A DNA stretch of 62,014 bases from Guillardia theta CCMP2712 (taxonomy: Eukaryota; Protista; Cryptophyta): assembly GCF_000315625.1 (NCBI RefSeq), contig NW_005434448.1, positions 1 to 62,014 of the forward strand. Reading direction: 5' to 3'. This document shows positions 564 to 55,605 of this stretch, in pieces; position 1 is the first letter of the stretch, and every line of letters begins with the position of its first letter. The notes under the pieces were generated by a model that made no database searches, was not told the DNA's origin, and was given only the letters and a program-made list of their open reading frames with translations. The position numbers and the translations under genes are program-made.

Positions 564-3500
564 ATGTCTCCCATTGCTGAAGACTACGCGAGAGAGTTAG
601 ATCTTGCGCACGAGACCAATGGGATCTTGATGATTGAAGAAGGCTCACAACACGGAAAAGAAGTACAAGCACAGGAATCTTCGTCAAGGCCCAAGTCAAG
701 AATCACCGAAGATGCACGGCAATACATGTTGAAATGTACAGAACGGTCAGGAAGCCATATGCAGAATGAGTTTCATACTTATCGTCTGTCAATTTACCAG
801 AAAGAGTTGTGGAGGGTGTTCTGCTCTTCCAAACCCTTCTCAGCCGGCATGACGCTAATAAGTGTTCAGATCATTCTCCTTCTCCTTCTAGCCGACCTCC
901 TCTTTGGCCTCCCTGTGAATACTGCGATGTGGAATCTACCAGAATCCACGAAGAGGAGTGTCTCCTTTCAATACTTCCGGCTAAGAGTCTTGGCGCTCAG
1001 GAATGGTGCGAGTGGATCGGCGATCAAATCCATAGGGTTGACTTCTTGGGGGTTAATGCACCAAAATTGTGAGATTCCAGCCAGGGAAAATGGGTGGGTT
1101 GATGGTGTGAAACATGTTGAAGACCGCCAAGGTTCGATAGCATACCTGAACTTCTCTACGCCCGTGCTTGTTGATGGTTGGTTCGTCGTGACATCCAACA
1201 TGTCTGTCGAGATGGACCCCTCGACTTTCGTTGTCGAGGCACTCGAGGACGGGGAGTGGCAGATCCTTGGACTGTCGCACGCGTGTGGCTGGAGGCCCCT
1301 TGTAGAACTTGAGGAAGTACAAATCTCGAGTGACAAGCTCCCCTCGTTCACACTGCCGAAAGAGCGAGTGAAAACTGTCAAGTTCCTCAACGCGGATTCA
1401 AGGTGTGTTTGGGGATCTTGTGCACAGATGATTGGGAGATACGTCGAAGGGATTTCTCTTCTGCTCGCCGTCTTAGCAATCAGAAAGGGATGGTTCGAAT
1501 GGCCCGTCAAGGTATTCAAAACTTTGTCTGGGATGTTTTCGTTTGTTGTTGCATTCATTTCCAATGTCCCGTGCTCTGTTGTTCAGAGCAGATTCCATGT
1601 CGAATGTTTCGTGATGTTCTTCTGTCTTCAGTTTGATGTCCTTCATATTGATTTTTAGACGAGTGACACTGTACTCGCCAGCTCATCAGTGTCGCATTCT
1701 TCATTGGAGGGGTGGTAAAGATCAGTTCCTATGCTGCAATCTACGATTTATGGGAGCAGAACAATCAGATCGTTTTCATGGTCAACGGACTGGCGGTACA
1801 AACAAGATTCTCTCCTTCTTCATCCCCCTTGAGTAACTGCTCTCAACAGGACATCTTCGTCTTCCCAGCTCCTTTATTCTTCGATGAGTCATTCATACTC
1901 GAAACAGCCATCCTCGCCCAAGTCATCAAACTTCCAGTCAACAACTTGTCCGGAGACAATGTCGGGACTGCGTCCATACTGACAATGACTTCGGCGTTCG
2001 TCTTCTTGCTCATCCGACACCGGACCCGGGTCGTGTGCACGCGACAGATGCGAGAGATGAAGGAGAAGTTCGACAGCGCTTGGAACGTGCTGCTTCAAGA
2101 AGCCGGCAACTATGACGCGCTGCTGGCTCTCGACAACCTGGTGGCAGATCTTGAGATGAAGAGTCATTGGATGAGCACACCGAGGCAGCTTCGCCTTCCC
2201 TACCCTCAAAGAAACGCTCCCGCAGACCCAACGCAAGTTCAACGGGAAGCTTTGACCAGCGAGGATGTGAACGGCCAGAGTTCGACGAGTGACAACGAAG
2301 CTGGTCGGCCATCCTCCGGTCGTGCCCCCCTCGTCATCGAGAGGAACAGCCCCATGCTCTCAGCTGTCCTCGCCTCCATCCTGGCGCAAGAGCAGAGGGT
2401 GACATCGTTGGATCAGCTGTACGCGCGAAGTGTGACAGTCCAACCTCTGTTTGCGTCGAAGATCGTTGAGCTTGCGGAATCGTGTGAAGGAAGCTTCATG
2501 TTCTTCGACAATGACAACTTGATGTCTGCAAGGGATGTGAAGAAGAATGCGGACATGATGTCGTTGCTCACGAAGCTCTGTCTGAAACCTCTGGAGAGGA
2601 CGGTGGAGAAGCTTGTCGGGGCGTACGATGGCGACGTCTCGAGGCTCACGGACTTGGTGAGGCAGAGAATCGTCTTTGACAGCTTCAGCAACATCTTGCA
2701 ATGTCTGCAGACCATCTCGTCAGACCCCACGATCGAGATCGTGCAGGTGAAGAACAGGTTCCGCCCAGACGACGATGCCGTGAGGTCTGCGGGCTACCGC
2801 GACTTGTGCGTAAGGCTTCGTCTGAGGACAGACGAGACTCTGGCCATGGGCCTGGCCGGGTACGTCTGCGAGCTGCAGCTGTTCCATCGGAGATTCGTTA
2901 GCATTCTGAACGAGATGGACCATGAGGTCTACCTCAAGTTCCGCAGGGTGTTGAGGATGGAAGGGATCTACAAGCTGCAGAAGTTCCGGTCGTTGTTTAC
3001 GCGGTCGAAGGTCCTGTGCTCCTCGTCCGTGAGGTGTGTGGGGCTCTCGCAAGTTTGTGTCGCTAGGGAGGAGGAGGATGAGCAGCGGCAACAGCGGGAA
3101 GGGGGAGGGGAGAACGGGGAGCAGGAGGAGAACGCTGATGGGCAGGTTCAGGAGGAGGAGGAGGAGGAGGAGGAGGAGGAGGAGAACGAGGAGGATGTTT
3201 GCGAGGACAGAGCTCGCCAGATTCTCAAGTATCGCTGCCTCCTACCAGGGAATATCCTTGAGAGCCGTTTGAACCAGTTCTACCATGCGGTGAAGACGGC
3301 AGGGACAGCGAGTGTGCTGTTCACGCAGATCCCCTGCACTCTGGCGACGCAGAAGCCATGGGTCAAGATCTTTCTGTTCGCTACTTCCATCTACCTCCAA
3401 GTCATCTTCTTTGGTCCCGGGGGGTTTCTGCAGCAGTTCCTTGGGAACAACGTCTTCGAGGGGACCAGCTTCCGGTTCTCCTCCCTGCAGACGCGCAACG

Positions 3501-5101
3501 GCTCGCTGCCCGCCGACTCGGGCGTGGCCTCGATCGGCCTCCTCCTGAACGGGTGCAGGGTGACTGGGACGTTCAAGTTTGAGGAGAGAGGAACGGACTT
3601 CTTTCTCTTGAGCTCGAACCCTGTGAGCGCCAACGGCTGGTTCTTCCACGTGAAGGCGGAGCAGCCTCGCTCGCTCGATCCCGTGCGGTTCCGGCTCGAC
3701 GTGACGAGCAGCATGACCCCCAGCCTCCCCTCCTCCTCGTGGAAGACCGTCTCGGCATCGCACTGTGTGTGGGACATCGGGTCCTCCCGCTGCCTTCCCC
3801 TCCCTGAGATGGTCTTCCCAACCTCCTCCTCCCCGTCCGTGGCGAACGAGATCAGCTTGCACATCCCTTGGTTCAACGCGCTAGGCTCGATCTTCATCTA
3901 TATCCCCGTCTTCGTCTTCGTCTTTCTCGTCCCCGTCTTCGCTACCCTTGGGCGGACGTCGCTCACGCTCCTCTCGTTCGGCCTGGCCTTCTTCATCCCC
4001 GGAGTTATCGAGGTCATCGTCGGGGCCGCGAGCTTCAGCAACAGCCCTCTCTCCCTCCTCTACTGGCTCTTCCTGGGGTTCTCCTCCATCGTCTTCGGCC
4101 TCATCCTGAACTTCAAAGAGGCGTACACCATGACTTACGTTCCTATCCACTTCATCTTCTGCTTCACTGGCCTCCAGGTACAGAACTACCTCGTGTACAG
4201 GAACAACTCGTTCCAGCTCCCCCTCACGGCCTCGATCTTCGCCCTCGTCTGGCTTCTCTTCGTCGTCCTCCGCTTCTTCGCGCTGCGCAAGGCGCGGGAG
4301 GAGGTCTCTATGGACATGAACAAGTACAGTGAGCTGTGGCAGCGGACCAAGGAGGGGGAGGAGGCGTCGGAGCTGCTGAGCAGGCTCTCGAGGATGGGTA
4401 GGGAGTTCAACATGTCCAAGAGAGCAAGGCACCTCAAGAAGCGACTCAGCACGTCTGCCATCAGCACCGCCATGGAGCACTTCCCAGCTGTGAACGAGTC
4501 CTTCCGAAGGAAACAGCCTGCCCTGACCAAGGTCTGGTCCATGGACCAGGTGTATGCGCAGGCGTTCCTACTGCAGCCGCTGTTTCTCCACAAGGTCCAA
4601 CAGCTAGCCCTGCGGTCGCGCGGCTGTTTCCTGGCAGACTCGAACGAGTTCGAGCTGGTGAGGTGGGAGGGGGTGAGCAGGGAGGAGAAACTGAGGAGGA
4701 GAGTCAAGTTCGCCACAGTCAAGAGCGTGGACCGGGCGATGGAGAAGGCTTCGCGCTCCTATACGGGGGACGTGTCGCGGCTGACGGACATCGTGCGGCA
4801 GTGCATCGTGTTCACAAGCCTTAAGGACTTGGTGAGCTGCTTCGACGAGGTGATCAAGGACGACGAACTCCTCGTCCTCCGCGTCAAGAACAGGTTCGAT
4901 GACAGCTACGACGCCAACTTCTCCGCCGGGTACCGCGACCTCTGCATCAACGTGCTGCTGAGATCTGAGCTGGCTGCGAGCTGGGGGCTGTCGGGCCACG
5001 TTTGCGAGCTCCAGCTGACCCTGGAGGAGTTCAAGGAGTGGAGCTGGGAAGGGGAGGGTCACAAGAGATACGTCAAGTACAGGAACAAGCGCTGCGAGTA
5101 A
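564..5101 (+). CDS. Multi-pass membrane protein with two RelA/SpoT-like (p)ppGpp-synthetase-fold nucleotidyltransferase domains; internal tandem duplication, ~1440 aa
   Basis: ORFs 564-1658 and 1712-5101 join through a phase-0 GT..AG intron 1512-1681 (WPVK|LISVAFFIGG). A second in-frame 54-nt intron at 1796-1849 is likely. Two copies of K..xxR..EK / D-[LI]-V-R / [QR]VKNRF / SAGYRDLC / CELQL (about 2570-2950 and 4715-5100) resemble the RSH Syn1-Syn4 motifs. True start may lie further upstream. Confidence 0.8.
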
Positions 5102-5140
5102 GGAGGAGGATGGGACGAGTGGTCTTAAGAAGGGCGGGGC

Positions 5141-5172
<32 letters not shown>

Positions 5173-5303
5173 TTCGGGGGGTAAGAGAATTTTCTTCTTG
5201 CAACGGAAGAAGAGATGTAAATTAGACAAAATATTGAAATGTTCAGAAATCAAATATTTCATAAACTTTAATTTTGAAGCACACAGTCCCCTTCCCTCTC
5301 TAT

Positions 5304-5714: not shown

Positions 5715-10221
<4,507 letters not shown>

Positions 10222-19433: not shown

Positions 19434-22400
19434 ATGCGACAACCATCTTTTGAGACACTGATGCACAAGACCCCTTGGAACGTTCACGATGACTTTTTGT
19501 TGGTGCTCCTTCTCTGTACATGCATGATGCATGCCACACCGGCCGCTGCATTATGGAGCAGGTCCTGCGGGGGATGTACCTTCAGAGTATCAGCGGATGG
19601 GAACTTGACAAGGACAGGAAATTGCACGACAACGTGTACGTCAGTAGATTTGAGCTATGCTGGCATTCGACGAATAGACGAAGGTGTCTTCAACAACACT
19701 TGGAGCTTGACTGAAATACGTCTCTCCGGCAACAAGCTGACGAGCGTACCTGCGACGGTCTTCGCCGGCCTTGCTAGCCTTCAGTACTTGTATCTCTCCT
19801 CCAACAAGCTGACGAGCATACCTGAGACGGTCTTCGCCGGCCTTGCTAGCATCCGGGTCCTGATTCTCTCCGGCAACGAGCTGACGAGCGTACCTGAGAC
19901 GGTCTTCGCCGGCCTTGCTAGCCTTCAGTACTTGTATCTCGACAACAACAAGCTGACGAGCGTACCTGCGACGGTCTTCAACGGCCTTGCCAGCCTCCAG
20001 ACCTTGTATCTCTCCTCCAACAAGCTGACGAGCGTACCTGAGACGGTCTTCAACGGCCTTGCCAGCCTCCGAAGCTTGTATCTCGACAACAACGAGCTGA
20101 CGAGCGTACCTGAGACGGTCTTCGCCGGCCTTGCTAGCCTCCAGACCTTGTATCTATACGACAACGAGCTGACGAGCATACCTGCGACGGTCTTCGCCGG
20201 CCTTGCCAGCCTCCAGACCTTGTATCTCTCCTACAACAAGCTGACGAGCGTACCTGAGACGGTCTTCGACGGCCTTGCCAGCCTCCGAAGCTTGTATCTC
20301 TCCTACAACGAGCTGACGAGCGTACCTGAGACGGTCTTCGACGGCCTTGCCAGCCTCCAGTACTTGTATCTCTCCTCCAACAAGCTGACGAGCGTACCTG
20401 CGACGGTCTTCGCCGGCCTCACCAGCCTCCAGACCTTGTATCTCTCCGGCAACGAGCTGACGAGCGTACCTGAGACGGTCTTCACCGGCCTTGCCAGCCT
20501 CCAGACCTTGTATCTCTCCTCCAACAAGCTGACGAGCGTACCTGAGACGGTCTTCAACGGCCTTGCCAGCCTCCAGACCTTGTATCTCTCCTCCAACAAG
20601 CTGACGAGCGTACCTGCGACGGTCTTCGCCGGCCTTGCCAGCCTCCAGTACTTGTATCTATACGACAACGAGCTGACGAGCATACCTGCGACGGTCTTCG
20701 CCGGCCTCACCAGCCTCCAGAGCTTGTATCTCTCCTCCAACAAGCTGACGAGCGTACCTGAGACGGTCTTCGACGGCCTTGCCAGCCTCCAGACCTTGTA
20801 TCTCTCCTCCAACAAGCTGACGAGCGTACCTGCGACGGTCTTCAACGGCCTTGCCAGCCTCCAGACCTTGTATCTATACGACAACGAGCTGACGAGCATA
20901 CCTGCGACGGGCTTCAACGGCCTTGCCAGCCTTCAGACCTTGTATCTCTCCTCCAACGAGCTGACGAGCATACCTGAGACGGTCTTCGCCGGCCTTGCCA
21001 GCCTCCAGACCTTGTATCTCTCCGGCAACGAGCTGACGAGCGTACCTGAGACGGTCTTCGCCGGCCTTGCCAGCCTCCAGACCTTGTATCTCTCCGGCAA
21101 CGAGCTGACGAGCGTACCTGAGACGGTCTTCGCCGGCCTTGCCAGCCTCCAGACCTTGTATCTCTCCTCCAACGAGCTGACGAGCATACCTGAGACGGTC
21201 TTCGCCGGCCTTGCCAGCCTTCAGTACTTGTATCTCTCCTCCAACAAGCTGACGAGCGTACCTGAGACGGTCTTCGCCGGCCTTGCTAGCCTCCAGACCT
21301 TGTATCTCTCCTACAACGAGCTGACGAGCGTACCTGAGACAGTCTTCAACGGCCTTGCCAGCCTCCAGACCTTGTATCTCTCCTACAACAAGCTGACGAG
21401 CGTACCTGCGACGGTCTTCGCCGGCCTTGCCAGCCTCCGAAGCTTGGGTCTATACGACAACAAGCTGACGAGCGTACCTGCGACGGTCTTCGCCGGCCTT
21501 GCCAGCCTCCGAAGCTTGAGCTTAGACTTCAACGAGCTGACGAGCATACCTGAGACGGTCTTCGCCGGCCTCACCAGCCTCCAGACCTTGTATCTATACG
21601 ACAACGAGCTGACGAGCGTACCTGAGACGGTCTTCAACGGCCTTGCCAGCCTTCAATACTTGTATCTCGACAACAACAAGCTGACGAGCATACCTGAGAC
21701 GGTCTTCGCCGGCCTTGCTAGTGTCCAGACCTTGTATCTCTCCGGCAACGAGCTGACGAGCGTACCTGAGACGGTCTTCAACGGCCTTGCTAGTCTCCAG
21801 TATCTGAATGTTTCCTCTAACGAGCTGACGAGCGTACCTGAGACGGTCTTCGACGGCCTTGCCAGCCTCCAGACCTTGGATCTCTCCTACAACAAGCTGA
21901 CGAGCGTACCTGAGACGGTCTTCGCCGGCCTTGCCAGCCTCCGAAGCTTGTATCTCGACAACAACGAGCTGACGAGCGTACCTGAGACGGTCTTCGCCGG
22001 CCTTGATAGTCTGTGGCGGCTGGATCTCCACAGCAACCGCCTTGCAAGCCTTGCTCTCAGCCTCTTCTATGACTGCCATGACCTCATGGAGCTCTACCTC
22101 AACAACAACCTGCTCTCCGGCCTCCTGCCCGGATCTCTCGACGGGCTTGTCAGCCTTGAAGCCTTGTATCTTCACAGCAATCAGCTCGCTGATATCTCTT
22201 CCGACGTCTTCGCCCAGCTCTCATCGCTCACAACCCTCACTCTTCATAACAACCGACTCTCCAGCTTGTCGCCAGGAGCCTTCGCCGGCCTTGCTCGGCT
22301 CACTACCTTGTCCATACATCACAATCGCCTCACCCGCCTCTCGCCCGGAGCCTTTCAAGGCCTGTCGACCCTCGCTACGCTGGACCTCCATGACAACCAC

Positions 22401-25100
22401 TTGACAAGTCTCACGGCAGGCGCGCTCACCGGCCTTGACGCCATGCGGGCGTTGGATCTCTCCAGCAACAAACTCGCTGACCTGCCTGCCCAAGCGCTTC
22501 ACAACCTCACCGGCTTGCGCAACCTCTCGCTTGACGATAACCAGCTCACCAGCTTGTCAGCTGGAGTGTTGGAGCCCCTCGCGGGTCTAGAGTACTTGTG
22601 GTTGAGCCACAACAGGCTGGCTGAGGTGCCAGCTGGGCTCGGCTCTCTCGCGAGCCTCCGGTACCTCCTGCTGGACCACAACCCCTTGACGTCGCTCGAC
22701 GTCAGCCTGCTGGACAACAAGCCCGACCTGCGAGCGCTGGGTGTCAACTCCGACGCCTTCAAGGCCCTCTCTGCCCAGAGGCCAAGCGTGCTCGAGACGC
22801 TGCTGGAGCTCTGGCTGTGCAAGTCTGACGACGACCAGGATCAGAGCGCTGCTGGAGAGCTGCTGGACAAGCTGAGTCAGCTGACCGGCTTGTATCTCTT
22901 CGGCTTCGATCAGTCGCTCATCCATGCTGGCATGCTCAGCTCGCTCTCGAGCGTGCGAGTCCTGTGGCTTGAGGACAACCTCCTCGACCAGCTCCCGCCC
23001 GGCACCTTCGACCAGCTGCCGAGCCTGCAGTCTCTCTACCTCATCCACAACGGTCTGACGGCTGTACCGGTCGCTGCTCTCAGCAACCTCAGCGGCTTGA
23101 CGGAGCTGCACATAGTCAACGACGGCATCACGAGAGTGCCAGCAGGAGCCTTCAGGTCCTTGTCAGGGCTGAGGACGTTGGATCTGTCAGGCAATCTGAT
23201 CTCGAGCATCGAAGCAGAAGCCTTTGACAACCTGGACAACGTGCGACAGCTGGACCTCTCTAACAACAGACTCGTCATGCTTGACGTAGCGGAGCTGCGC
23301 GGGCTTGGAAACTCAGATTGGATGTCAATCTATCTCTACGACAACCCCATCGCCTACATATCGGTGCAGAACAACTTCTCGCCTCGTATCATCTACATCC
23401 TAGGCAGTCACAAGCTTTTATGCTACAACCGCATGTGGAAAGCTTTCTACAATGGCCTTGAGGGTTTCATGTACAAACGCTACATGCATGGACAAGTCTT
23501 GCTGCAACAATATGACTATGACTATCTCCCGCTGACGCTACCAGCCTGCCGCGATCAGACGAGCAACGGACCACTACCTGCATCGTCAACCGTCAAGCTA
23601 TCAGCTCCAGTCTCCACCACCCCGCCAGCTCCCCTCATCACTACCCCTCCACCTGCTGTAGACACAACTCCGAGGCCCCTCAGGTCAGACAACTCATCGC
23701 TGGCTCCGAGGACAGTCGCTGCTGTCTCTACTCTCATCGCCTCCTCCACCGCCGTCGCTGCCACCACCATGATCACCAGCGCCATGGTCTCCGCCGCCCT
23801 CCCAGCCGTCTCCTCGGTCAGCGGTACCGCCGCGTCCGCGTCCGTGTCAGCGTCCACGTCAGCATCGACATCGGCTTCGTCGGGGAGGAGCGGGTCGTTG
23901 GCGCTGTCTCTGATCCTTCAGACTCAGTTCATCTCCATCAGTGATCGGATCGCCGGAGGGTCAGGCACGCAGGAGATCGACTCGCTCGCAAGCAAGCTCC
24001 GTTGGTCCAACTACTACTTCTTCCCTCTCTTTCCCAGCTCCCTCAACGACCCCAGGTGCGCCGACGCCATGCGGTCTGACAACGAGCTGCTGTCGACGGT
24101 CGTGGCTTGTGCTGGGGCCCTGGTGGTCACGTCGCTGCTTCGAGTGTCTGTGAGCAAGCTGTACGTGTACTGGAGGGAGGGCAAGCTCTCGGACGAGGTC
24201 TTGACGACTCCGTTTCTAGCTTGGGAGCTGCCGGTGGCCGTCACTCAGGTCCAGGGCTTGTCGCTGTCGGCTGCTCTAGCTACGAGCAGCGGGTGTGTCA
24301 TGTACGTTGTGTTGGGAGCGGTGCTGCTGCTGCTGCTGCTGCTGGAGCTTGCTGCCATGCTCTACTCGGTGGCTCGCGGGCGTGCCTCAGACATCGTGTG
24401 GACCGCCAGGTCTCGTCGAGTCGCGTGGGCTGAGGCCAGGGAGGCGCTGGGGCAGCTGGGGACGAGGCCGTTGACCGAGGTCACTGAGGCGATGAGCGCT
24501 GTCTTGGCGCGGGGGTCGTGGAAGATCGACGAGAGGAGAGACCGGCAGCTGGCGTCATGGCTGTACGTGAAGCGGTTCGGAGCGCTGCTGGAGGAGGTTT
24601 GCCAGCACGCGTGGTGGTATGGGCTGTACTCCATCGCTGTGCGAGTCGTCTACTCCTTGACTGTGTCTCTGCCGATGGTCGACGAGACGAGGACGGGGAT
24701 CATGTCAGGCTTGCTGCTGCTGGACCTCGTCTTGCTCGTCGCCTTCACTCCTCAGCTGGATTGGCTCGCTTGGCTGTCGCAGCTGCTCGCAGCTCTCGGC
24801 AACTTTGGCATCTGCTTGTCCTTCCTGGCGGCCTCGATCTGGACGGTGAAGCCGGAGACCCTCAACCAGACGTTCATCGTCTGCCTACTCGTCTCCATGA
24901 TGCCCATGATATTTCTCAGCTTGTGCAAGGACGCTTACAAAGCTTTCAGCGCCGTCTCGGTCATCTCGAGGAAGCGCAAGCAGATGACGCGCGTGTCGCA
25001 TGAAGACCCTGCTGCAGCAGGGGATGAAGTCAACGATGGGAAGGAGGAAGAGCGAGAGCAGGAGGGGGCTGTGCTGCATGTGATCGTGGGAGAAGGTTAG
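19434..25100 (+). CDS. LRR receptor-like multi-pass membrane protein, 1888 aa, single open reading frame
   Basis: Signal-peptide-like segment, Cys-containing N-cap, 32 near-identical 24-aa typical-class LRRs, then about 18 diverged LRRs, a Thr/Pro/Ser stalk (TTPPAPLITTPPP) and roughly 8 hydrophobic helices at the C-terminus. Confidence 0.9.
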   Translation: MRQPSFETLMHKTPWNVHDDFLLVLLLCTCMMHATPAAALWSRSCGGCTFRVSADGNLTRTGNCTTTCTSVDLSYAGIRRIDEGVFNNTWSLTEIRLSGNKLTSVPATVFAGLASLQYLYLSSNKLTSIPETVFAGLASIRVLILSGNELTSVPETVFAGLASLQYLYLDNNKLTSVPATVFNGLASLQTLYLSSNKLTSVPETVFNGLASLRSLYLDNNELTSVPETVFAGLASLQTLYLYDNELTSIPATVFAGLASLQTLYLSYNKLTSVPETVFDGLASLRSLYLSYNELTSVPETVFDGLASLQYLYLSSNKLTSVPATVFAGLTSLQTLYLSGNELTSVPETVFTGLASLQTLYLSSNKLTSVPETVFNGLASLQTLYLSSNKLTSVPATVFAGLASLQYLYLYDNELTSIPATVFAGLTSLQSLYLSSNKLTSVPETVFDGLASLQTLYLSSNKLTSVPATVFNGLASLQTLYLYDNELTSIPATGFNGLASLQTLYLSSNELTSIPETVFAGLASLQTLYLSGNELTSVPETVFAGLASLQTLYLSGNELTSVPETVFAGLASLQTLYLSSNELTSIPETVFAGLASLQYLYLSSNKLTSVPETVFAGLASLQTLYLSYNELTSVPETVFNGLASLQTLYLSYNKLTSVPATVFAGLASLRSLGLYDNKLTSVPATVFAGLASLRSLSLDFNELTSIPETVFAGLTSLQTLYLYDNELTSVPETVFNGLASLQYLYLDNNKLTSIPETVFAGLASVQTLYLSGNELTSVPETVFNGLASLQYLNVSSNELTSVPETVFDGLASLQTLDLSYNKLTSVPETVFAGLASLRSLYLDNNELTSVPETVFAGLDSLWRLDLHSNRLASLALSLFYDCHDLMELYLNNNLLSGLLPGSLDGLVSLEALYLHSNQLADISSDVFAQLSSLTTLTLHNNRLSSLSPGAFAGLARLTTLSIHHNRLTRLSPGAFQGLSTLATLDLHDNHLTSLTAGALTGLDAMRALDLSSNKLADLPAQALHNLTGLRNLSLDDNQLTSLSAGVLEPLAGLEYLWLSHNRLAEVPAGLGSLASLRYLLLDHNPLTSLDVSLLDNKPDLRALGVNSDAFKALSAQRPSVLETLLELWLCKSDDDQDQSAAGELLDKLSQLTGLYLFGFDQSLIHAGMLSSLSSVRVLWLEDNLLDQLPPGTFDQLPSLQSLYLIHNGLTAVPVAALSNLSGLTELHIVNDGITRVPAGAFRSLSGLRTLDLSGNLISSIEAEAFDNLDNVRQLDLSNNRLVMLDVAELRGLGNSDWMSIYLYDNPIAYISVQNNFSPRIIYILGSHKLLCYNRMWKAFYNGLEGFMYKRYMHGQVLLQQYDYDYLPLTLPACRDQTSNGPLPASSTVKLSAPVSTTPPAPLITTPPPAVDTTPRPLRSDNSSLAPRTVAAVSTLIASSTAVAATTMITSAMVSAALPAVSSVSGTAASASVSASTSASTSASSGRSGSLALSLILQTQFISISDRIAGGSGTQEIDSLASKLRWSNYYFFPLFPSSLNDPRCADAMRSDNELLSTVVACAGALVVTSLLRVSVSKLYVYWREGKLSDEVLTTPFLAWELPVAVTQVQGLSLSAALATSSGCVMYVVLGAVLLLLLLLELAAMLYSVARGRASDIVWTARSRRVAWAEAREALGQLGTRPLTEVTEAMSAVLARGSWKIDERRDRQLASWLYVKRFGALLEEVCQHAWWYGLYSIAVRVVYSLTVSLPMVDETRTGIMSGLLLLDLVLLVAFTPQLDWLAWLSQLLAALGNFGICLSFLAASIWTVKPETLNQTFIVCLLVSMMPMIFLSLCKDAYKAFSAVSVISRKRKQMTRVSHEDPAAAGDEVNDGKEEEREQEGAVLHVIVGEG
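19700..22004 (+). repeat. Coding tandem array, 32 x 72 bp (LRR units)
   Basis: Recurring core aac[a/g]agctgacgagc[g/a]tacctg[a/c]gacggtcttc..cggcct at 72-nt period; 32 units counted in the translation. Confidence 0.97.
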
Positions 25101-46220: not shown

Positions 46221-49200
46221 TTATAAACCCAGGTTTTTGAGCTTCTGAATGATCTGCCGCTTCGTCCTCATCGCCTCCTCCCAGCCCTTCCTCTCCCCCT
46301 TCACGTCCTCTGTCCTGATGTCGTAGTACGTGGCCGACAGCCGCTCCTCCGGCTCCAGGAACTTGTTGGACGTCTTGAAGGAGCTCCCCGTCCTGCACAA
46401 GGACACATCGCCCATGAAGAACCGCGACAGCCTCCAGCTCTTGATGAACATCCGCCGCTCATGCCGAAGCACCAGGTCCGCGAACGGGAAGAACCAGATC
46501 CTGTGGACGTCGTGCGAGTCGATCTCGTAGCTGCGGTTCATCATGGCGATGATCAGGTTGAGGAGGAGCAGCTCCGAGAGGATCGACCATGAGATGAGCA
46601 GCATGAAGGAGAGCGTCGGGTTGACAGATGCGAGGAGCAGCTGGGTGGAGAAGACGTAGTCGTCTCCGAGAGAGTTCCAGGTCAGCTGGAGGAAGCTGGC
46701 CCCCGGGGTCGTGAGGTAGTTGAAGAACCTCGTGCTGTTGTTGTCCTCGTACAGCTTCTGCACGTCTGCGGTCTGCAGCATGGTGTACAAGGCGAGGCTG
46801 AACCCGGTCAGCGTGACCCCGTAGATGACGCAGTAGAGGCTCACGTCCTGTAGGAGAATGTCGTAGATCATGATCATGATCGTTCCCACCCGCTTGATCG
46901 GCAGCAGCAGGTGGAGCAGCAGCGAGAATACCAGCACCGTCGACATCGCCAGCAGCAGCACGTCGGCAGCCGTGTCCGTAGGAGCGTGTATTGGGATGCA
47001 GAAGACCAAGACGGCAGTGAGGATGGAGAGGATGGAGGAGATATTCTTCTGCAGCAGCTTCTTGAAATCCATCCTCTTGTACCTCTCCGAGGGGTTCCTG
47101 TCGGTCTGCTTGAGGTGTCGATGGGTCCAGCCGAAAAATAAGAGCCATACCCCCAATGCCTTCACCAAGACGTTCAGCGCAAGAGTCCACGAGTGGAGCG
47201 AGTGTAGCTCAGGTCCCTGCTGCTTCTGATCCCACTGCTTCACCTTGAGGACGAGGAGCGCGACGAAGGCGACCAGGAACAAGGAGAAAGGCAGGGCCGT
47301 GTCGATCAAGTAGATGCGACGACCGAAGCGCTTCCACTTGGTCTCGATGAGCCGGTTGATGAAGGGATCGTTGACAAACTCCTCCACCTCATGCTCTACT
47401 ATCACTTCCAGAGCGCTCCTCCACTTGGGGTGCGAGTGCATGCGCGTCTTCTCGGCCGCAGCCGGCCACCACCAGCGTAGAGACAGGGCTGCCTTGCTTG
47501 TCGTTTGCTCCTTCTGCTCCTGCTCCTCCTCCTTCTCCTTTTCGTTCTTCACCTCCTTCTTCTCCCTTCTGAACGAGTCGATCTGGTCCAGACTCACCTG
47601 GGTCCGCTGCTTCGACCCGAATGCCCACAGAATCGTTTTCATGTATCGCTCCAGGATGAAGTAGAACGTGTCCACGTCCCCATGCCGGGCTGCGAGCGTA
47701 AGCGGGGTGTAGCCGTCCTTGTTCAGCATGGTCAGCAGCGTCTCTGCCTCTTCCTCTGCCTCTTCCTCTGCCTCTTCCCCTGCCTCTTCCTCTGCCTCTT
47801 CCTCTGCCTCGCCCATGCTGCTTCGAGAGGTCTTGCTCCCGTCGCCTCCAGTCATGTCCCGCAGGATGTTATCGATACGCTTTTCCGCCTCGATCAAGCA
47901 CGATATGACCTCGTGATGTCCGTGCAGTGTAGCTATGTGCAGAGCCGTGTTGCCGAACTCGTCCGCGGCATGCAAGATGCTCTTCAAGTCTTGTGCGTTT
48001 ATCTGAGCTTCGTTGAGCCATTCAGGAGCAAGCACGTGCTTTAGCATCAGACAAATCCCTTGCCAGCCGTCAAGAGTTTGCAAGCAATCACACTTGCTTT
48101 CCTTATGACTGACCAGCTGACTGTAGACAAAGTCAAGGATGGCCTTGCACACATCCTCGTTGCCTGTGCTGGCAGCAAACGACAGCGGATACTGTCCCCA
48201 GTACTTGTGAGACCCGGTGGAGGAGTCCTTGTTGTCTTCGAGCTTCGATAGGGCTACAGGCTTCCGGTCGGTGCCAATGGGCTCGTCGGTCAGATATGCT
48301 CTGAGCAAGCCGAGCCGGGAGACATCGACATCGGTCTTGATGAGCGAAGGGAGGAAGAAGTCTCCGATCGCCCTCCGGTGTAGGATGAGATCACTCTCTG
48401 TGACTTTGGACTTGTTGTGGTCGCTGCTGGGTTTCGGATACAAGATCCACTTTACCATCCCACATACACCGCCAAAGCAAGCTTGTGTCCTGCTGCTCTT
48501 CACCTGGCCCTTCGCTTCTTCACCCTGGCCCTTCGCTTCTCCGTCCTCGCCCTTCGCTTCTTTGCCCTCGCTCTGAGCGACTTCGTTTGATGGCTTCGAC
48601 GTTCGTTTTGGCGGTGCAGTAGCGTATCTTTCAAGCAGCCATTCCACAGTCTCCTTATCCTCGTTGGCGATGCATATGTGGAGGATGGTCTCACCTGTGT
48701 ACAAGCCGCGAGTGGCTGCAAACTTGCCGTCTTTCTGCCAACGTTGGAACTCGCTTTCATAGCCAAGCAGCACCTGCTTTTCCGAGAACCAATTGGCTTC
48801 CAGAAGCTTTGTTGCGAGTCTCAGCATAGATCGTACATTGTCTTCGCTGGTGTATGCGAGGAGGAAAGCGATGTGGACAACGGAGTCACCCATGGGACCG
48901 ATCGGGATTCCAAATGTTGTATGATCGTTGATGCGCTGTTTGAGGCTTGTCAAGTTGGTTTCTACCCAGTCGTCCAGTTGAACGGAGGACAGCTCCTTCG
49001 CTTTGCTGAGATCTGAAAAGAATTTCCACAAGTCTGTTTCAACTTGCAGCTTCGTGTGTAAGCTTCGTATCGATGAAACATCTGACAAACGTCTCGAAGT
49101 TATGATGCTTGTAAGAGTTTCCTGTTTCCTGTCATTGTTCCCCCTCACACCATCGTTCTGCTTCGGTTTCGCACTTTCTCCTATGAGTTTTGCTGCTGGT

Positions 49201-49418
49201 GCGAAAACTTCGATGTAATACTGGTCCTTGTTGTCATTGCTTCCATTGTTGTCCACCCTACGTTCAGCCCCCTCGTGTTGTTCACCGATTTCTCTATGGT
49301 CTCCTACCTCCATAGGTTGTGAAACTATCACGACTCACTTGGATTTTTCTTCCGAGTGTTGCTTCACAGTGTCCTGTCCTTCCTCCTGCGAACTCTGAAC
49401 GTCCTCATATCTCTTCAT
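46221..49418 (-). CDS. TRPV-like ankyrin-repeat cation channel, copy A
   Basis: Ankyrin motifs YTGETILHICIAN, YWGQYPLSFAASTG, FGNTALHIA, GYTPLTLAA; pre-S1 LIETKWKRFG; six TM helices; pore LTWNSLGDD; S6/TRP helix LLNLIIAMMNRSY..IWFFPFADLVL. Probable first exon ATG 49418 with a ~45-nt intron (~49295-49339) that joins in phase. Confidence 0.9.
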
Positions 49419-51906: not shown

Positions 51907-54082
51907 ATGTCAACTTGTGTTGACCCGGCTTCCCTGGTACGAGGAGCGTTGAAGGTCACTCTGCCGATGGCGGGGGGAGGGGAAGGCCACAAGTGCGGGG
52001 AAGGGCCGCGAGCAAGGAGAGGGTCACTGAAGGAGGAGGAGGAGGCTGCTGCTTCCGATGCTGAAAGTGTGGAAAGCTCTGAAGAGCGTGAGAGGGGCGG
52101 GGGCGGAGGGGAGGAGATCGAGGAGGAAGACCCCGTGCAAGTTCAGCCGAAGGCTCAAGGAGACATATCTTCGACTGAGTCATCAGCTGCAGTGAGTGAA
52201 GGAAAGAAGACGCCAACAAGACCTCACTGGACACTTGAAAAGGCAGGTACACTCGTGAGATCAACCTTTCCAGTCGGAAATCACACATCGGAAAAACTAG
52301 AGAAATCACCAACGAAATCTCGCTGGGGTGTGGCAATTGCAAACGTAAGAAATGTCATGAAAATGACCGCAGGCTTCCGATTCAGAAATCACAGTACATG
52401 CAAGAACTCGGACGACATCAGATTTTATGTGGTGACTAAAGATGGCCATGGAACAACCAGTGATCCCCTTAAGCTCCGAGAAAACTCCCAGAAAGCTCAA
52501 ATTCAAAGTGAAATCTGGAAGTTCTTCCAACGTCTCAGTGAGAAGAAATCTGATGCTGGAGGCAGCGTTGAACATGTTATGCAAGAATTGCAAATCGTCA
52601 TCTCTCAAGAGCAAATCAAAAGTCAAGAAAGGGAAAAACAAGAGCAACCAGGAATTCACACGGAAACGCATCCTAAGCAGGACCCACCTGAAGGAGCGAA
52701 TGACTCAGCACGACATTCAGGAAATTCCCACAGCATGCCCAAACGTATTCCGATCGGTCCCATGGGTGACTCCGTTGTCCACATCGCTTTCCTCCTCGCC
52801 TATGGTAGCAACAATGAAGACTTTATGGTGAAGTTGGCAAAGACGCTTGCTTCAAAGGAAGGTGGATGTTACACCGAACAGCAGGTGCTGCTTGGCTATG
52901 AAAGCGAGTTCCAACGTTGGAAGAAAGACGGCAAGTTTGCAGCCACTCGCGGCTTGTACACAGGTGAGACCATCCTCCACATATGCATCGCCAACGAGGA
53001 TAAGGAGACTGTGGAATGGCTGCTTGAAAGATACGCTACTGCACCGCCCAAACGAACGTCGAAGCCATCAAACGAAGTCGCTCAGAGCGAGGGCAAAGAA
53101 GCGAAGGGCGAGGACGGAGAAGCGAAGGGCCAGGGCGAAGAAGCAAAGGGCCAGGTGAAGAGCAGCAGGACACAAGCTTGCTTTGGCGGTGTATGTGGGA
53201 TGGTAAAGTGGATCTTGTACCCGAAACCCAGCAGCGACCATAACAAGTCCAAAGTCACAGAGAGTGATCTCATCCTACACCGGAGGGCGATCGGAGACTT
53301 CTTCCTCCCTTCTCTCATCAAGACCGACGTCGATGTCTCCCGGCTCGGCTTGCTCAGAGCATATCTGACCGACGAGCCCATTGGCACCGACGGGAAGCCT
53401 GTAGCCCTATCGAAGCTCGAAGACAACGAGGACTCCTCCACCGGGTCTCACAAGTACTGGGGACAGTATCCGCTCTCGTTTGCTGCCAGCACAGGCAACG
53501 AGGATGTGTGCAAGGCCATCCTTGACTTTGTCTACAGTCAGCTGGTCAGTCATAAGGAAAGCAAGTGTGATTGCTTGAAGACTATGAAAGGCAGCGTCAA
53601 GTCGATCTGTCTGATGGTACAGCACGTGCTTGCTCCTGAATGGCTCAACGAAGCTCAGATAAACGCACAAGACTTGAAGAGCATCTTGCATGCCGCGGAC
53701 GAGTACGGCAACACGGCTCTGCACATAGCTACACTGCACGGACATCACGAGGTCATATCGTGCTTGATCGAGGCGGAAAAGCGTATCGATAACATCCTGC
53801 GGGACATGACTGGGGGCGACGGGAGCAAGACCTGTCGAAGCAGCATGGGCGAGGCAGAGGAAGAGGCAGAGGAAGAGGCAGAGACGCTGCTGACCATGCT
53901 GAACAAGGACGGCTACACCCCGCTTACGCTCGCAGCCCGGCATGGGGACGTGGACACGTTCTACTTCATCCTGGAGCGATACATGAAAACGATTCTGTGG
54001 GCATTCGGGTCGAAGCAGCGGACCAAGCTGAGACTGGACCAGATCGACTCGTTCAGAAGGGAGAAAAAGAAGGAGAAGGAGA

Positions 54083-54117
<35 letters not shown>

Positions 54118-55605
54118 AAGGAGGAGAAGGAGAAGGAGAAGGAGAAGCAGGAGGAGAAGGAGGAGGAGAAGAAGAAGAAGGAGAAGAAGAAGGAGAAGGA
54201 GAAGAAGAAGGAGAAGGAGAAAAAGCAGAAGCAGGAGCAGAAGGAGGTGAAGAAGGAGGTGAAGAAGGAGGTGAAGAAGGAGGAGGAGAAAGAGCCGGAA
54301 ACAAAGAAGGAAGTGCAAACGACAAGCAAGGCAGCCCTGTCTCTACGCTGGTGGTGGCCGGCTGCGGTCGAGAAGACGCGCATGCACTCGCACCCCAAGT
54401 GGAGGAGCGCTCTGCAAGTGATAGTAGAGCATGAGGTGGAGGAGTTTGTCAATGATCCCTTCATCAACCGGCTCATCGAGACCAAGTGGAAGCGCTTCGG
54501 TCGTCGCATCTACTTGATCGACACGGCCCTGCCTTTCTCCTTGTTCCTGGTCGCCTTCGTCGCGCTCCTCGTCCTCAAGGTGAAGCAGTGGGATCAGAAG
54601 CAGCGAGGAGCTGAGCTACACTGGTGGACTCTTGCGCTGAACGTCTTGGTGAAGGCATTGGGGGTATGGCTCTTATTTTTCGGCTGGATCCATCGACACC
54701 TCAAGCAGACCGACAGGAACCCCTCGGAGAGGAACAAGAGGATGGATTTCAAGAAGCTGCTGCAGAAGAATATCTCCTCCATCCTCTCCATCCTCACTGC
54801 CGTCTTGGTCTTCTGCATCCCAATCTACACTTCTACGGACACGGCTGCCGACGTGCTGCTGCTGGCGATGTCGACGGTGCTGGTATTCTCGCTGCTGCTT
54901 CACCTGCTGCTGCCGATCAAGCGGGTGGGAACGATCATGATCATGATCTACGACATTCTCCTACAGGACGTGAGCCTCTACTGCGTCATCTACGGGGTCA
55001 CGCTGACCGGGTTCAGCCTCGCCTTGTACACCATGCTGCAGACGGCAGACGTGCAGAAGCTGTACGAGGACAACAACAGCACGAGGTTCTTCAACTACCT
55101 CACGACCCCGGGGGCCAGCTTCCTCCAGCTGACCTGGAACTCTCTCGGAGACGACTACGTCTTCTCCACCCAGCTGCTCCTCGCGTCTGTCAACCCGACG
55201 CTCTCCTTCATGCTGCTCATCTCATGGTCGATCCTCTCGGAGCTGCTCCTCCTCAACCTGATCATCGCCATGATGAACCGCAGCTACGAGATCGACTCGC
55301 ACGACGTCCACAGGATCTGGTTCTTCCCGTTCGCGGACCTGGTGCTTCGGCATGAGCGGCGGATGTTCATCAAGAGCTGGAGGCTGTCGCGGTTCTTCAT
55401 GGGCGATGTGTCCTTGTACAGGACGGGGAGCTCCTTCAAGACGTCCAACAAGTTCCTGGAGCCGGAGGAGCGGCTGTCGGCCACGTACTACGACATCAGG
55501 ACAGAGGACGTGAAGGGGGAGAGGAAGGGCTGGGAGGAGGCGATGAGGACGAAGCGGCAGATCATTCGGACATTGAAGAACGTCATGAGAGCTGACAGGC
55601 AGTAG
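51907..55605 (+). CDS. TRPV-like ankyrin-repeat cation channel, copy B
   Basis: Same motifs as copy A; near-identical DNA from ~52880 to ~55567; distinct N-terminus and an expanded E/K tract. Confidence 0.9.

Follow-up and report, generated by a model that had tools for sequence, protein, structure and literature searches.

The window analysed here is one whole contig (NW_005434448.1; 62,014 nucleotides (nt)) of the 87.1 Mb genome assembly of the cryptophyte Guillardia theta CCMP2712, which comprises 669 contigs. Positions 564-5101 of its forward strand carry a spliced gene encoding a predicted membrane protein with two RelA/SpoT homologue (RSH) synthetase domains, C1 and C2. Joining 564-1511, 1682-1795 and 1850-5101 gave 4314 nt encoding 1437 amino acids (aa), with a stop codon at the end only. 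The protein consists of two units, each comprising a transmembrane helix (TM), a beta-sandwich ectodomain, five further TM and an RSH synthetase domain. The public record of this twin-synthetase protein is GUITHDRAFT_121390, annotated as hypothetical or uncharacterized. Its model covers residues 122-1437, starts at Met122 and leaves off the N-terminal tail and TM1 (window 564-926), so that the apparent topology would be inverted. The gene has the following features:

564-1511 (+): exon 1, aa 1-316; leaderless acidic N-terminal tail, helix preceding TM1, TM1, ectodomain 1 and TM2
855-911 (+): TM1 of unit 1, likely a signal-anchor, outside the public model; hydropathy 2.54
951-1412 (+): ectodomain 1, aa 130-283, with two N-glycosylation sequons
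1413-2020 (+): TM2-TM6 bundle of unit 1, aa 284-411, with both introns inside
1512-1681 (+): intron 1, 170 nt, GT..AG; joint in contigs of the probable RNA runs X1, X2 and X4
1682-1795 (+): exon 2, aa 317-354; TM3 and beginning of TM4
1796-1849 (+): intron 2, 54 nt, GT..AG, in frame and without a stop; joint likewise in contigs of probable RNA runs
1850-5101 (+): exon 3, aa 355-1437 and stop
2396-2944 (+): synthetase domain C1, aa 537-719; keeps K600, R604, K608, D622, R625, K655, Y670, E695 and Q697, with R676 at the family N position and Y692 at the family H position
3065-3199 (+): acidic, Glu-rich inter-unit linker with a GAG repeat
3266-3415 (+): conserved pre-TM1 segment and TM1 of unit 2
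3443-3874 (+): ectodomain 2, aa 886-1029; all-beta sandwich with conserved cysteines and weak F5/8 type C / CBM32-like similarity
3875-4288 (+): TM2-TM6 bundle of unit 2, aa 1030-1167
4289-4528 (+): basic post-TM6 helices (candidate coupling helix; Tyr and Trp invariant in 20 paralogs), then a disordered linker
4529-5098 (+): synthetase domain C2, aa 1248-1437; 19 of 19 scored family motif residues, including K1312, R1316, K1320, D1334, R1337, K1367, Y1382, N1388, E1407 and Q1409

Transcript evidence and membrane topology

Database searches were made by exon or domain, the query 1682-5098 reading through the in-frame intron 2, and the joined 1437-aa protein was used for translation, hydropathy and comparison with retrieved sequences. 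Both exon joints, which a preliminary description of the sequence had already placed at these positions, were recovered in contigs assembled from three sequencing runs, probably of RNA, that belong to three studies. The ATG at 564 has an in-frame stop six codons upstream, and RNA contigs run past it into an intron-free leader. This leader contains ATGs at 455, 488 and 520, and the frame from 520 stops at a TAA overlapping the main ATG, which may be due to chance. Because the RNA contigs are interrupted at the GAG repeat (3138-3199), no single contig joins both halves. One gene with one transcript, as the preliminary description had assumed, is the best reading, though it is not formally bridged, since the two catalytic domains lie within 1144 codons free of stops, raw reads of run X17 accumulate at the far 3' end alone (4966-5300) and the layout is common to many paralogs.

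The tandem duplication proposed earlier was borne out by comparisons of the two halves. The catalytic domains share 39% identity across 185 aa (E 2e-42), the ectodomains are 30% identical over 114 aa in pairwise BLAST (E 2e-7), and a profile made from the half-2 receptor regions of paralogs, with the window row excluded, matched aa 85-392 of half 1 with an E-value of 1e-16. Hydropathy gave five clear peaks in each half. For half 2, the AlphaFold model (predicted local distance difference test (pLDDT) 83) gives the weakly hydrophobic TM5, the fifth helix of the bundle, as a long helix; in all, the model contains a helix, an all-beta domain, five further long helices (six in total), two linker helices and the catalytic domain. 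In 20 paralogous half-2 sequences, the ectodomains contained 1.64 N-glycosylation sequons per 100 aa versus 0.18 in the catalytic domains, and K and R together made up 21-22% of loop 2-3 and of the stretch directly following TM6, compared with 7-9% of loops 3-4 and 5-6. This distribution strongly argues for an N-terminus inside, outward-facing ectodomains and catalytic domains in the cytosol. The 6TM-C1-6TM-C2 layout and the cytosolic side of the catalytic domains in the preliminary description are, therefore, predicted here as well, and in agreement with it neither an HD domain (in the searches by exon or domain) nor a hydrophobic leader at the N-terminus was found.

The conserved pre-TM1 segment and the post-TM6 helix have invariant Pro, Tyr and Trp residues. 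The TM sequences are strongly divergent among paralogs, with a conserved Glu after TM4, and the searches matched no transporter or channel family. Structural matches of the bundle to TMEM45A (Z 10) and rhodopsin were under the threshold for helical bundles and were discarded. The ectodomain was modelled with a pLDDT of 91.5, and its best structural match was a domain of the galactanase BT0290 (Z 7.6), followed by CBM32 and discoidin rows with Z ~4. F5/8 type C (PF00754) matched two of 55 family members (best E 8e-4), the ectodomain profile matched the GH92 mannosidase 7NSN weakly (E 0.04) and an Atlas search with the ectodomain gave scores < 0.8 only. Foldseek matches to PTEN C2 and immunoglobulin folds were non-significant. 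The receptor-like ectodomains described earlier are upheld, their kin are distant, and a lectin-like nature is a lead and not a result.

Catalytic domains and the receptor family

The C2 model has the fold of RSH synthetases, as the comparison with RelP and RelQ proposed in the preliminary description revealed: Z-scores were 12.2 for RelP, 11.8 for RelQ, 11.5 for Tas1 and 10.2 each for CapRel and SaEAS, and Tas1 had the lowest root-mean-square deviation (2.6) and the highest identity (24%) among the fold matches. All 50 Foldseek rows obtained with the C2 model were RSH synthetases with a probability of 1.0, and C1 probably takes this fold too, judged from its identity to the modelled C2. A search of the family profile against the PDB matched Tas1 and RelP only (each E 8e-5). 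The genome-matched relative P0009 bears the Pfam RelA_SpoT mark, UniRef automatically labels one paralog as RelA/SpoT domain-containing, and a search of NCBIfam gave nothing relevant. Rows for TTK kinase and actinin were set aside, since their alignment was confined to the helical N-terminal portion of the profile.

The motifs first assigned to the protein were those of canonical RSH synthetases, i.e. RxKxxxSxxxK (Syn1), DxxxxR (Syn2), GYxxxH (Syn3) and ExQ (Syn4), of which ExQ is intact. Syn1 is KxxxRxxxK, with no R at -2 and R replacing S at +4, Syn2 is DxxR, and both align residue for residue with Tas1 (6OX6). Syn3 is GYRD, the His is absent and a conserved Asn follows further on; RelP/RelQ align at GYR, at ExQ and at a C-terminal HK motif. 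The metal-binding Asp/Glu pairs are D622/E695 in C1 and D1334/E1407 in C2. Of 123 single-domain relatives, 122-123 retain the catalytic D, R and E, as do all 19 C2 paralogs. SaEAS has the same spacing (D121/R124), and Apk1 uses R330, K353, N370 and E382 (PMC12691689). K1367, N1388 and E1407 fit K353, N370 and E382 of Apk1 by order and conservation in a region outside the residue-level alignment with Tas1; the conserved Asn after GYRD may, by its order, match N370, and C1 has R at this position. Enzymatic activity of the protein is a prediction of moderate confidence. Since enzymes of the Tas1/Apk1 type produce adenosine 5'-diphosphate 3'-diphosphate (ppApp), its guanosine counterpart ppGpp or both (PMC12691689), the product is not callable from the sequence. 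As the motifs fit Tas1/SaEAS and not canonical RSH, ppGpp should not be assumed to be the product by default, and a role in defence or a toxin-like action is no less plausible than second-messenger signalling.

C1 and C2 are not equally conserved. The core of K, K, D, R and E is kept by both in almost every twin protein, but of 14 further motif residues C1 keeps 69% on average versus 95% for C2 (12 versus 14 in GUITHDRAFT_121390), and, in 42 of 44 twin proteins, the consensus of single domains was closer to C2 than to C1, the rows being related and not independent. In a quick tree, C1 and C2 did not form two clades: 15 label changes were found, at least 10 of them forced by well-supported branches, and in several genes the own C1 and C2 were sisters, up to 84-87% identical. 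The mixed tree indicates that twin genes arose repeatedly or were homogenised by conversion, C1 eroding afterwards, which argues against a fixed complementary C1/C2 heterodimer. By its residues, C1 is an eroded copy and, since it keeps the ATP/metal core, would be a weaker, retuned or regulatory partner. In L042, L043, L044, L046, L047 and P0024, C1 and C2 inside one gene are 77-87% identical, probably due to intragenic gene conversion or recent duplication. In class III adenylyl cyclases, the active site is assembled from complementary C1 and C2 halves. The analogy to these enzymes drawn in the preliminary description fits in topology only, since both domains keep the core, single-unit receptors are common and C1 and C2 are repeatedly nearest relatives within a gene; neither complementary half-sites nor the class III fold were found.

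The gene is not a singleton. The paralog count suggested earlier, carried out as a profile search of the G. theta genome, revealed 109 matches: 29 twin genes with domains ~2.1 kb apart on the same strand, ~20 complete domains that occur singly and a remainder of weak, partial matches. About 20 weak matches are restricted to Syn1-Syn2, lie in frames of 800-1500 codons (contigs C4, C31, C37, C53, C100, C117, C229 and others) and may represent a second, more distant subfamily. Canonical RSH genes with HD and synthetase domains are present twice, at separate loci. The family profile found 457 representatives at E 1e-30 and 6054 at E 0.001. Among 158 relatives examined, 34 had at least two domain matches, and many of the single-domain ones share the ectodomain and the TM bundle. 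Named members are from the cryptophytes Guillardia, Hanusia, Rhodomonas and Hemiselmis, plus one fragment from Cymbomonas. Atlas look-alikes, which are leads only, were for the most part clusters from eukaryotes, along with a few records of ciliates and diatoms; some tetratricopeptide-repeat, ankyrin, bacterial and phage clusters also occurred. No relatives were found in viral contigs, in bacterial and archaeal genomes (pattern scan) or in phages (tblastn), by scans that detect close kin only.

Receptor parts are far more variable across paralogs than catalytic parts. The ratio of nonsynonymous to synonymous substitutions (dN/dS) in close paralog pairs was 0.2 for C1 and C2 and 0.31 for the ectodomain and TM bundle, i.e. 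purifying selection throughout, and the synonymous distance was uneven along the genes (in one pair 0.79 in the TM bundle versus 0.07 in C2), suggesting module exchange.

Two relatives are of interest by themselves. The environmental protein P0144 (1959 aa) has the synthetase domain at its end, together with an ADP-ribosyltransferase domain, leucine-rich repeats and several TM helices, a layout which suggests reuse of the synthetase module in defence-like architectures. P0189, in the cluster of P0104, is a partial member labelled as a Promethearchaeia metagenome-assembled genome; eukaryotic contamination of the bin is more likely than an archaeal gene.

Elsewhere in the window, a GH14 beta-amylase gene (5715-6897 (-) and further upstream) is convergent with the twin-synthetase gene, without an evident functional link. 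An 1888-aa leucine-rich-repeat frame with ~27 LRR_8 matches is located at 19434-25100 (+), and a divergent pair of similar genes at 46221-49331 (-) and 51907-55605 (+) encodes ankyrin and ion-transport domains, resembling transient receptor potential channels.

Proposed function and alternatives

We favour, with a little better than even confidence, the reading that the protein is a ligand-gated 3'-pyrophosphokinase, as predicted from sequence and models, whose product, a purine nucleotide of the alarmone type, would serve signalling or defence. It would be a receptor-enzyme of two units at the plasma membrane or an endomembrane, each with a lectin-like sandwich, a six-helix bundle and a cytosolic synthetase of the type of Tas1 and the exported synthetases. 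Binding of an outside cue, perhaps a glycan or another non-self ligand, would move the six-helix bundle, and the pre-TM1 segment and the post-TM6 helices would relay the signal to the catalytic domain. There, ATP would donate pyrophosphate to the 3'-OH of a purine nucleotide. The output would be (p)ppApp or, with lower probability, (p)ppGpp, and could serve as an alarm messenger or, in defence, as a self-limiting drain of ATP. C2 would be the main catalyst, and C1 its weaker or regulatory companion. Gating, ligand, product and the role of the twin protein are putative, with weak confidence.

Several observations weigh against this proposal. The Pfam profile RelA_SpoT (PF04607), with which the preliminary description had suggested to check the domains, gave a match with an E-value of 1.3e-5, but its 25.9 bits are below the gathering cut-off of 27. 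Neither the Syn3 His nor the Syn1 Arg, which in FaRel2 stacks on the donor ATP (PMC11782079), is present, although Tas1, where aligned, is also without that Arg. Acceptor specificity is not readable from the sequence. The identity of the ectodomain is weak (best Z 7.6 and none with Foldseek), and positive selection on the receptor parts was not seen in close paralog pairs. Finally, apart from the two HD-containing RSH genes no stand-alone alarmone hydrolase by which a signal could be reset was found in the genome, where introns may hide one.

Four other functions and a different gene structure were considered. The RSH-fold domains might sense nucleotides or be slow enzymes, and in either case control the 12-helix part as a channel, transporter or scaffold, so that information would flow from inside to outside. 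The 2 x 6 TM layout, the polar, weakly hydrophobic TM5, the conserved Glu after TM4, the erosion of C1 and the weak similarity of the bundle to TMEM45A would fit, but catalysis is favoured by the near-invariance of the D and E that bind the metal and by the complete set of motifs in C2 and in single units. The strong divergence of the TM sequences is unlike a conserved pore, and no transporter or channel family was hit; we regard this possibility as unlikely. A synthetase on the chloroplast endoplasmic reticulum, which cryptophytes possess, or on the phagosome could direct ppGpp at the plastid or at engulfed bacteria. Such a role is improbable, given that the protein has no leader, that its catalytic domains are predicted to be cytosolic and that the two canonical RSH genes could serve the plastid, although some Apk1-like enzymes make ppGpp (PMC12691689) and RelA_SpoT domains of fungal nucleotide-binding leucine-rich-repeat receptors (NLRs) were proposed by Dyrka et al. 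to manipulate bacteria (PMC4986451).

Rather unlikely, too, is a receptor-gated pyrophosphokinase acting on RNA 3' ends (tRNA CCA), which would block translation like FaRel2/CapRel. Chemistry and fold are shared with these enzymes (CapRel Z 10.2), an N-terminal helical extension precedes the catalytic core and an abortive defence role would suit a large, variable receptor family, but Syn1 and Syn2 fit the nucleotide-acting Tas1/SaEAS, and the canonical R, K, S, K and the D-to-R(+5) spacing of FaRel2 (PMC11782079) are absent from the cryptophyte family. For an obligate C1/C2 heterodimer with complementary roles in a shared, cyclase-like site, the topology matches and the asymmetry of the domains, with C1 the more divergent one in nearly all twin proteins, is consistent; it is nevertheless quite improbable because the five-residue core is present in both domains of nearly all genes, losses in C1 are not accompanied by fixed complementary changes, single-unit receptors exist, the C1/C2 labels change repeatedly on well-supported branches and Tas1 is monomeric (PMC11782079). 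Two separate genes or a decayed duplication, in accordance with the failure of any single RNA contig to bridge the GAG repeat, are very improbable in view of the long stop-free frame, the raw reads at the far 3' end only, the layout common to 29 paralogs and a dN/dS of ~0.2.

Significance and comparison with known systems

If the ligand-gated pyrophosphokinase reading is true, receptor-coupled cytosolic synthetases of the Tas1 type would be a new class of receptor-enzymes beside receptor cyclases, kinases and TIR proteins, would provide a testable origin for cytosolic alarmones in a eukaryote and would widen the pattern of bacterial conflict enzymes co-opted for eukaryotic sensing. To our knowledge, alarmone synthesis in eukaryotes is established for plastid RSH enzymes only, and synthesis of (p)ppApp for bacterial enzymes only, mostly toxins. 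The predicted protein may point to a receptor-to-nucleotide alarm system so far undescribed in eukaryotes. It is possible, though we tend to doubt it, that cryptophytes have dozens of cell-surface receptors which directly answer an outside cue by producing (p)ppApp, or a related 3'-pyrophosphorylated nucleotide, in the cytosol, i.e. a second-messenger or innate-defence pathway built on a bacterial toxin-type enzyme, the twin units combining two sensors in one chain.

Among known systems, Tas1/Apk1 (6OX6), Apk2 and SaEAS (8VX3) are alike in fold (Z 11.5 and 10.2), in Syn1 KxxxRxxxK and Syn2 DxxR and in having no hydrolase (PMC12691689, PMC10083569), and Tas1 is the best PDB sequence match of the cryptophyte family. 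They differ in being bacterial toxins that are secreted or injected and in several cases accompanied by immunity genes, whereas the Guillardia gene is nuclear and spliced and encodes a 12-TM receptor architecture with ectodomains, has neither an export or injection domain nor an immunity gene and is neighboured by the GH14 beta-amylase gene. The supplementary lists of the Apk1/EAS paper, whose search was confined to bacteria, name no cryptophyte (PMC12691689). RelP/RelQ (6FGK, 5DEC, 6EWZ) gave the best fold scores (Z 12.2, 11.8, 11.5), but are soluble oligomers with the canonical Syn1 R and S, Syn2 spacing and Syn3 His. Plastid RSH1-4 of plants and algae share only the superfamily and have an HD domain, a plastid leader and canonical motifs. 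Effectors of the XopAD/SKWP type, likened here by description, also have tandem RSH-like domains and a predicted action in the eukaryotic cell (PMC3482391), but are bacterial, injected and built of SKWP repeats without a membrane receptor part. Membrane class III adenylyl cyclases have the same 6TM-C1-6TM-C2 topology and internal duplication; unlike them, the Guillardia protein has an unrelated catalytic fold, a large ectodomain between TM1 and TM2, no complementary half-sites and common single-unit relatives. No paper on the twin-synthetase receptor family was found in a literature search that was thin on subscription journals; the kind of enzyme is known and the receptor architecture appears to be undescribed. 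The nearest published idea is the RelA_SpoT effector of fungal NLRs (PMC4986451); there, an N-terminal RSH synthetase is predicted to act, outside the plastid, as the output domain of a eukaryotic receptor for non-self. The fungal sensors are soluble NACHT-repeat proteins, whereas the Guillardia sensor is an ectodomain on a TM bundle.

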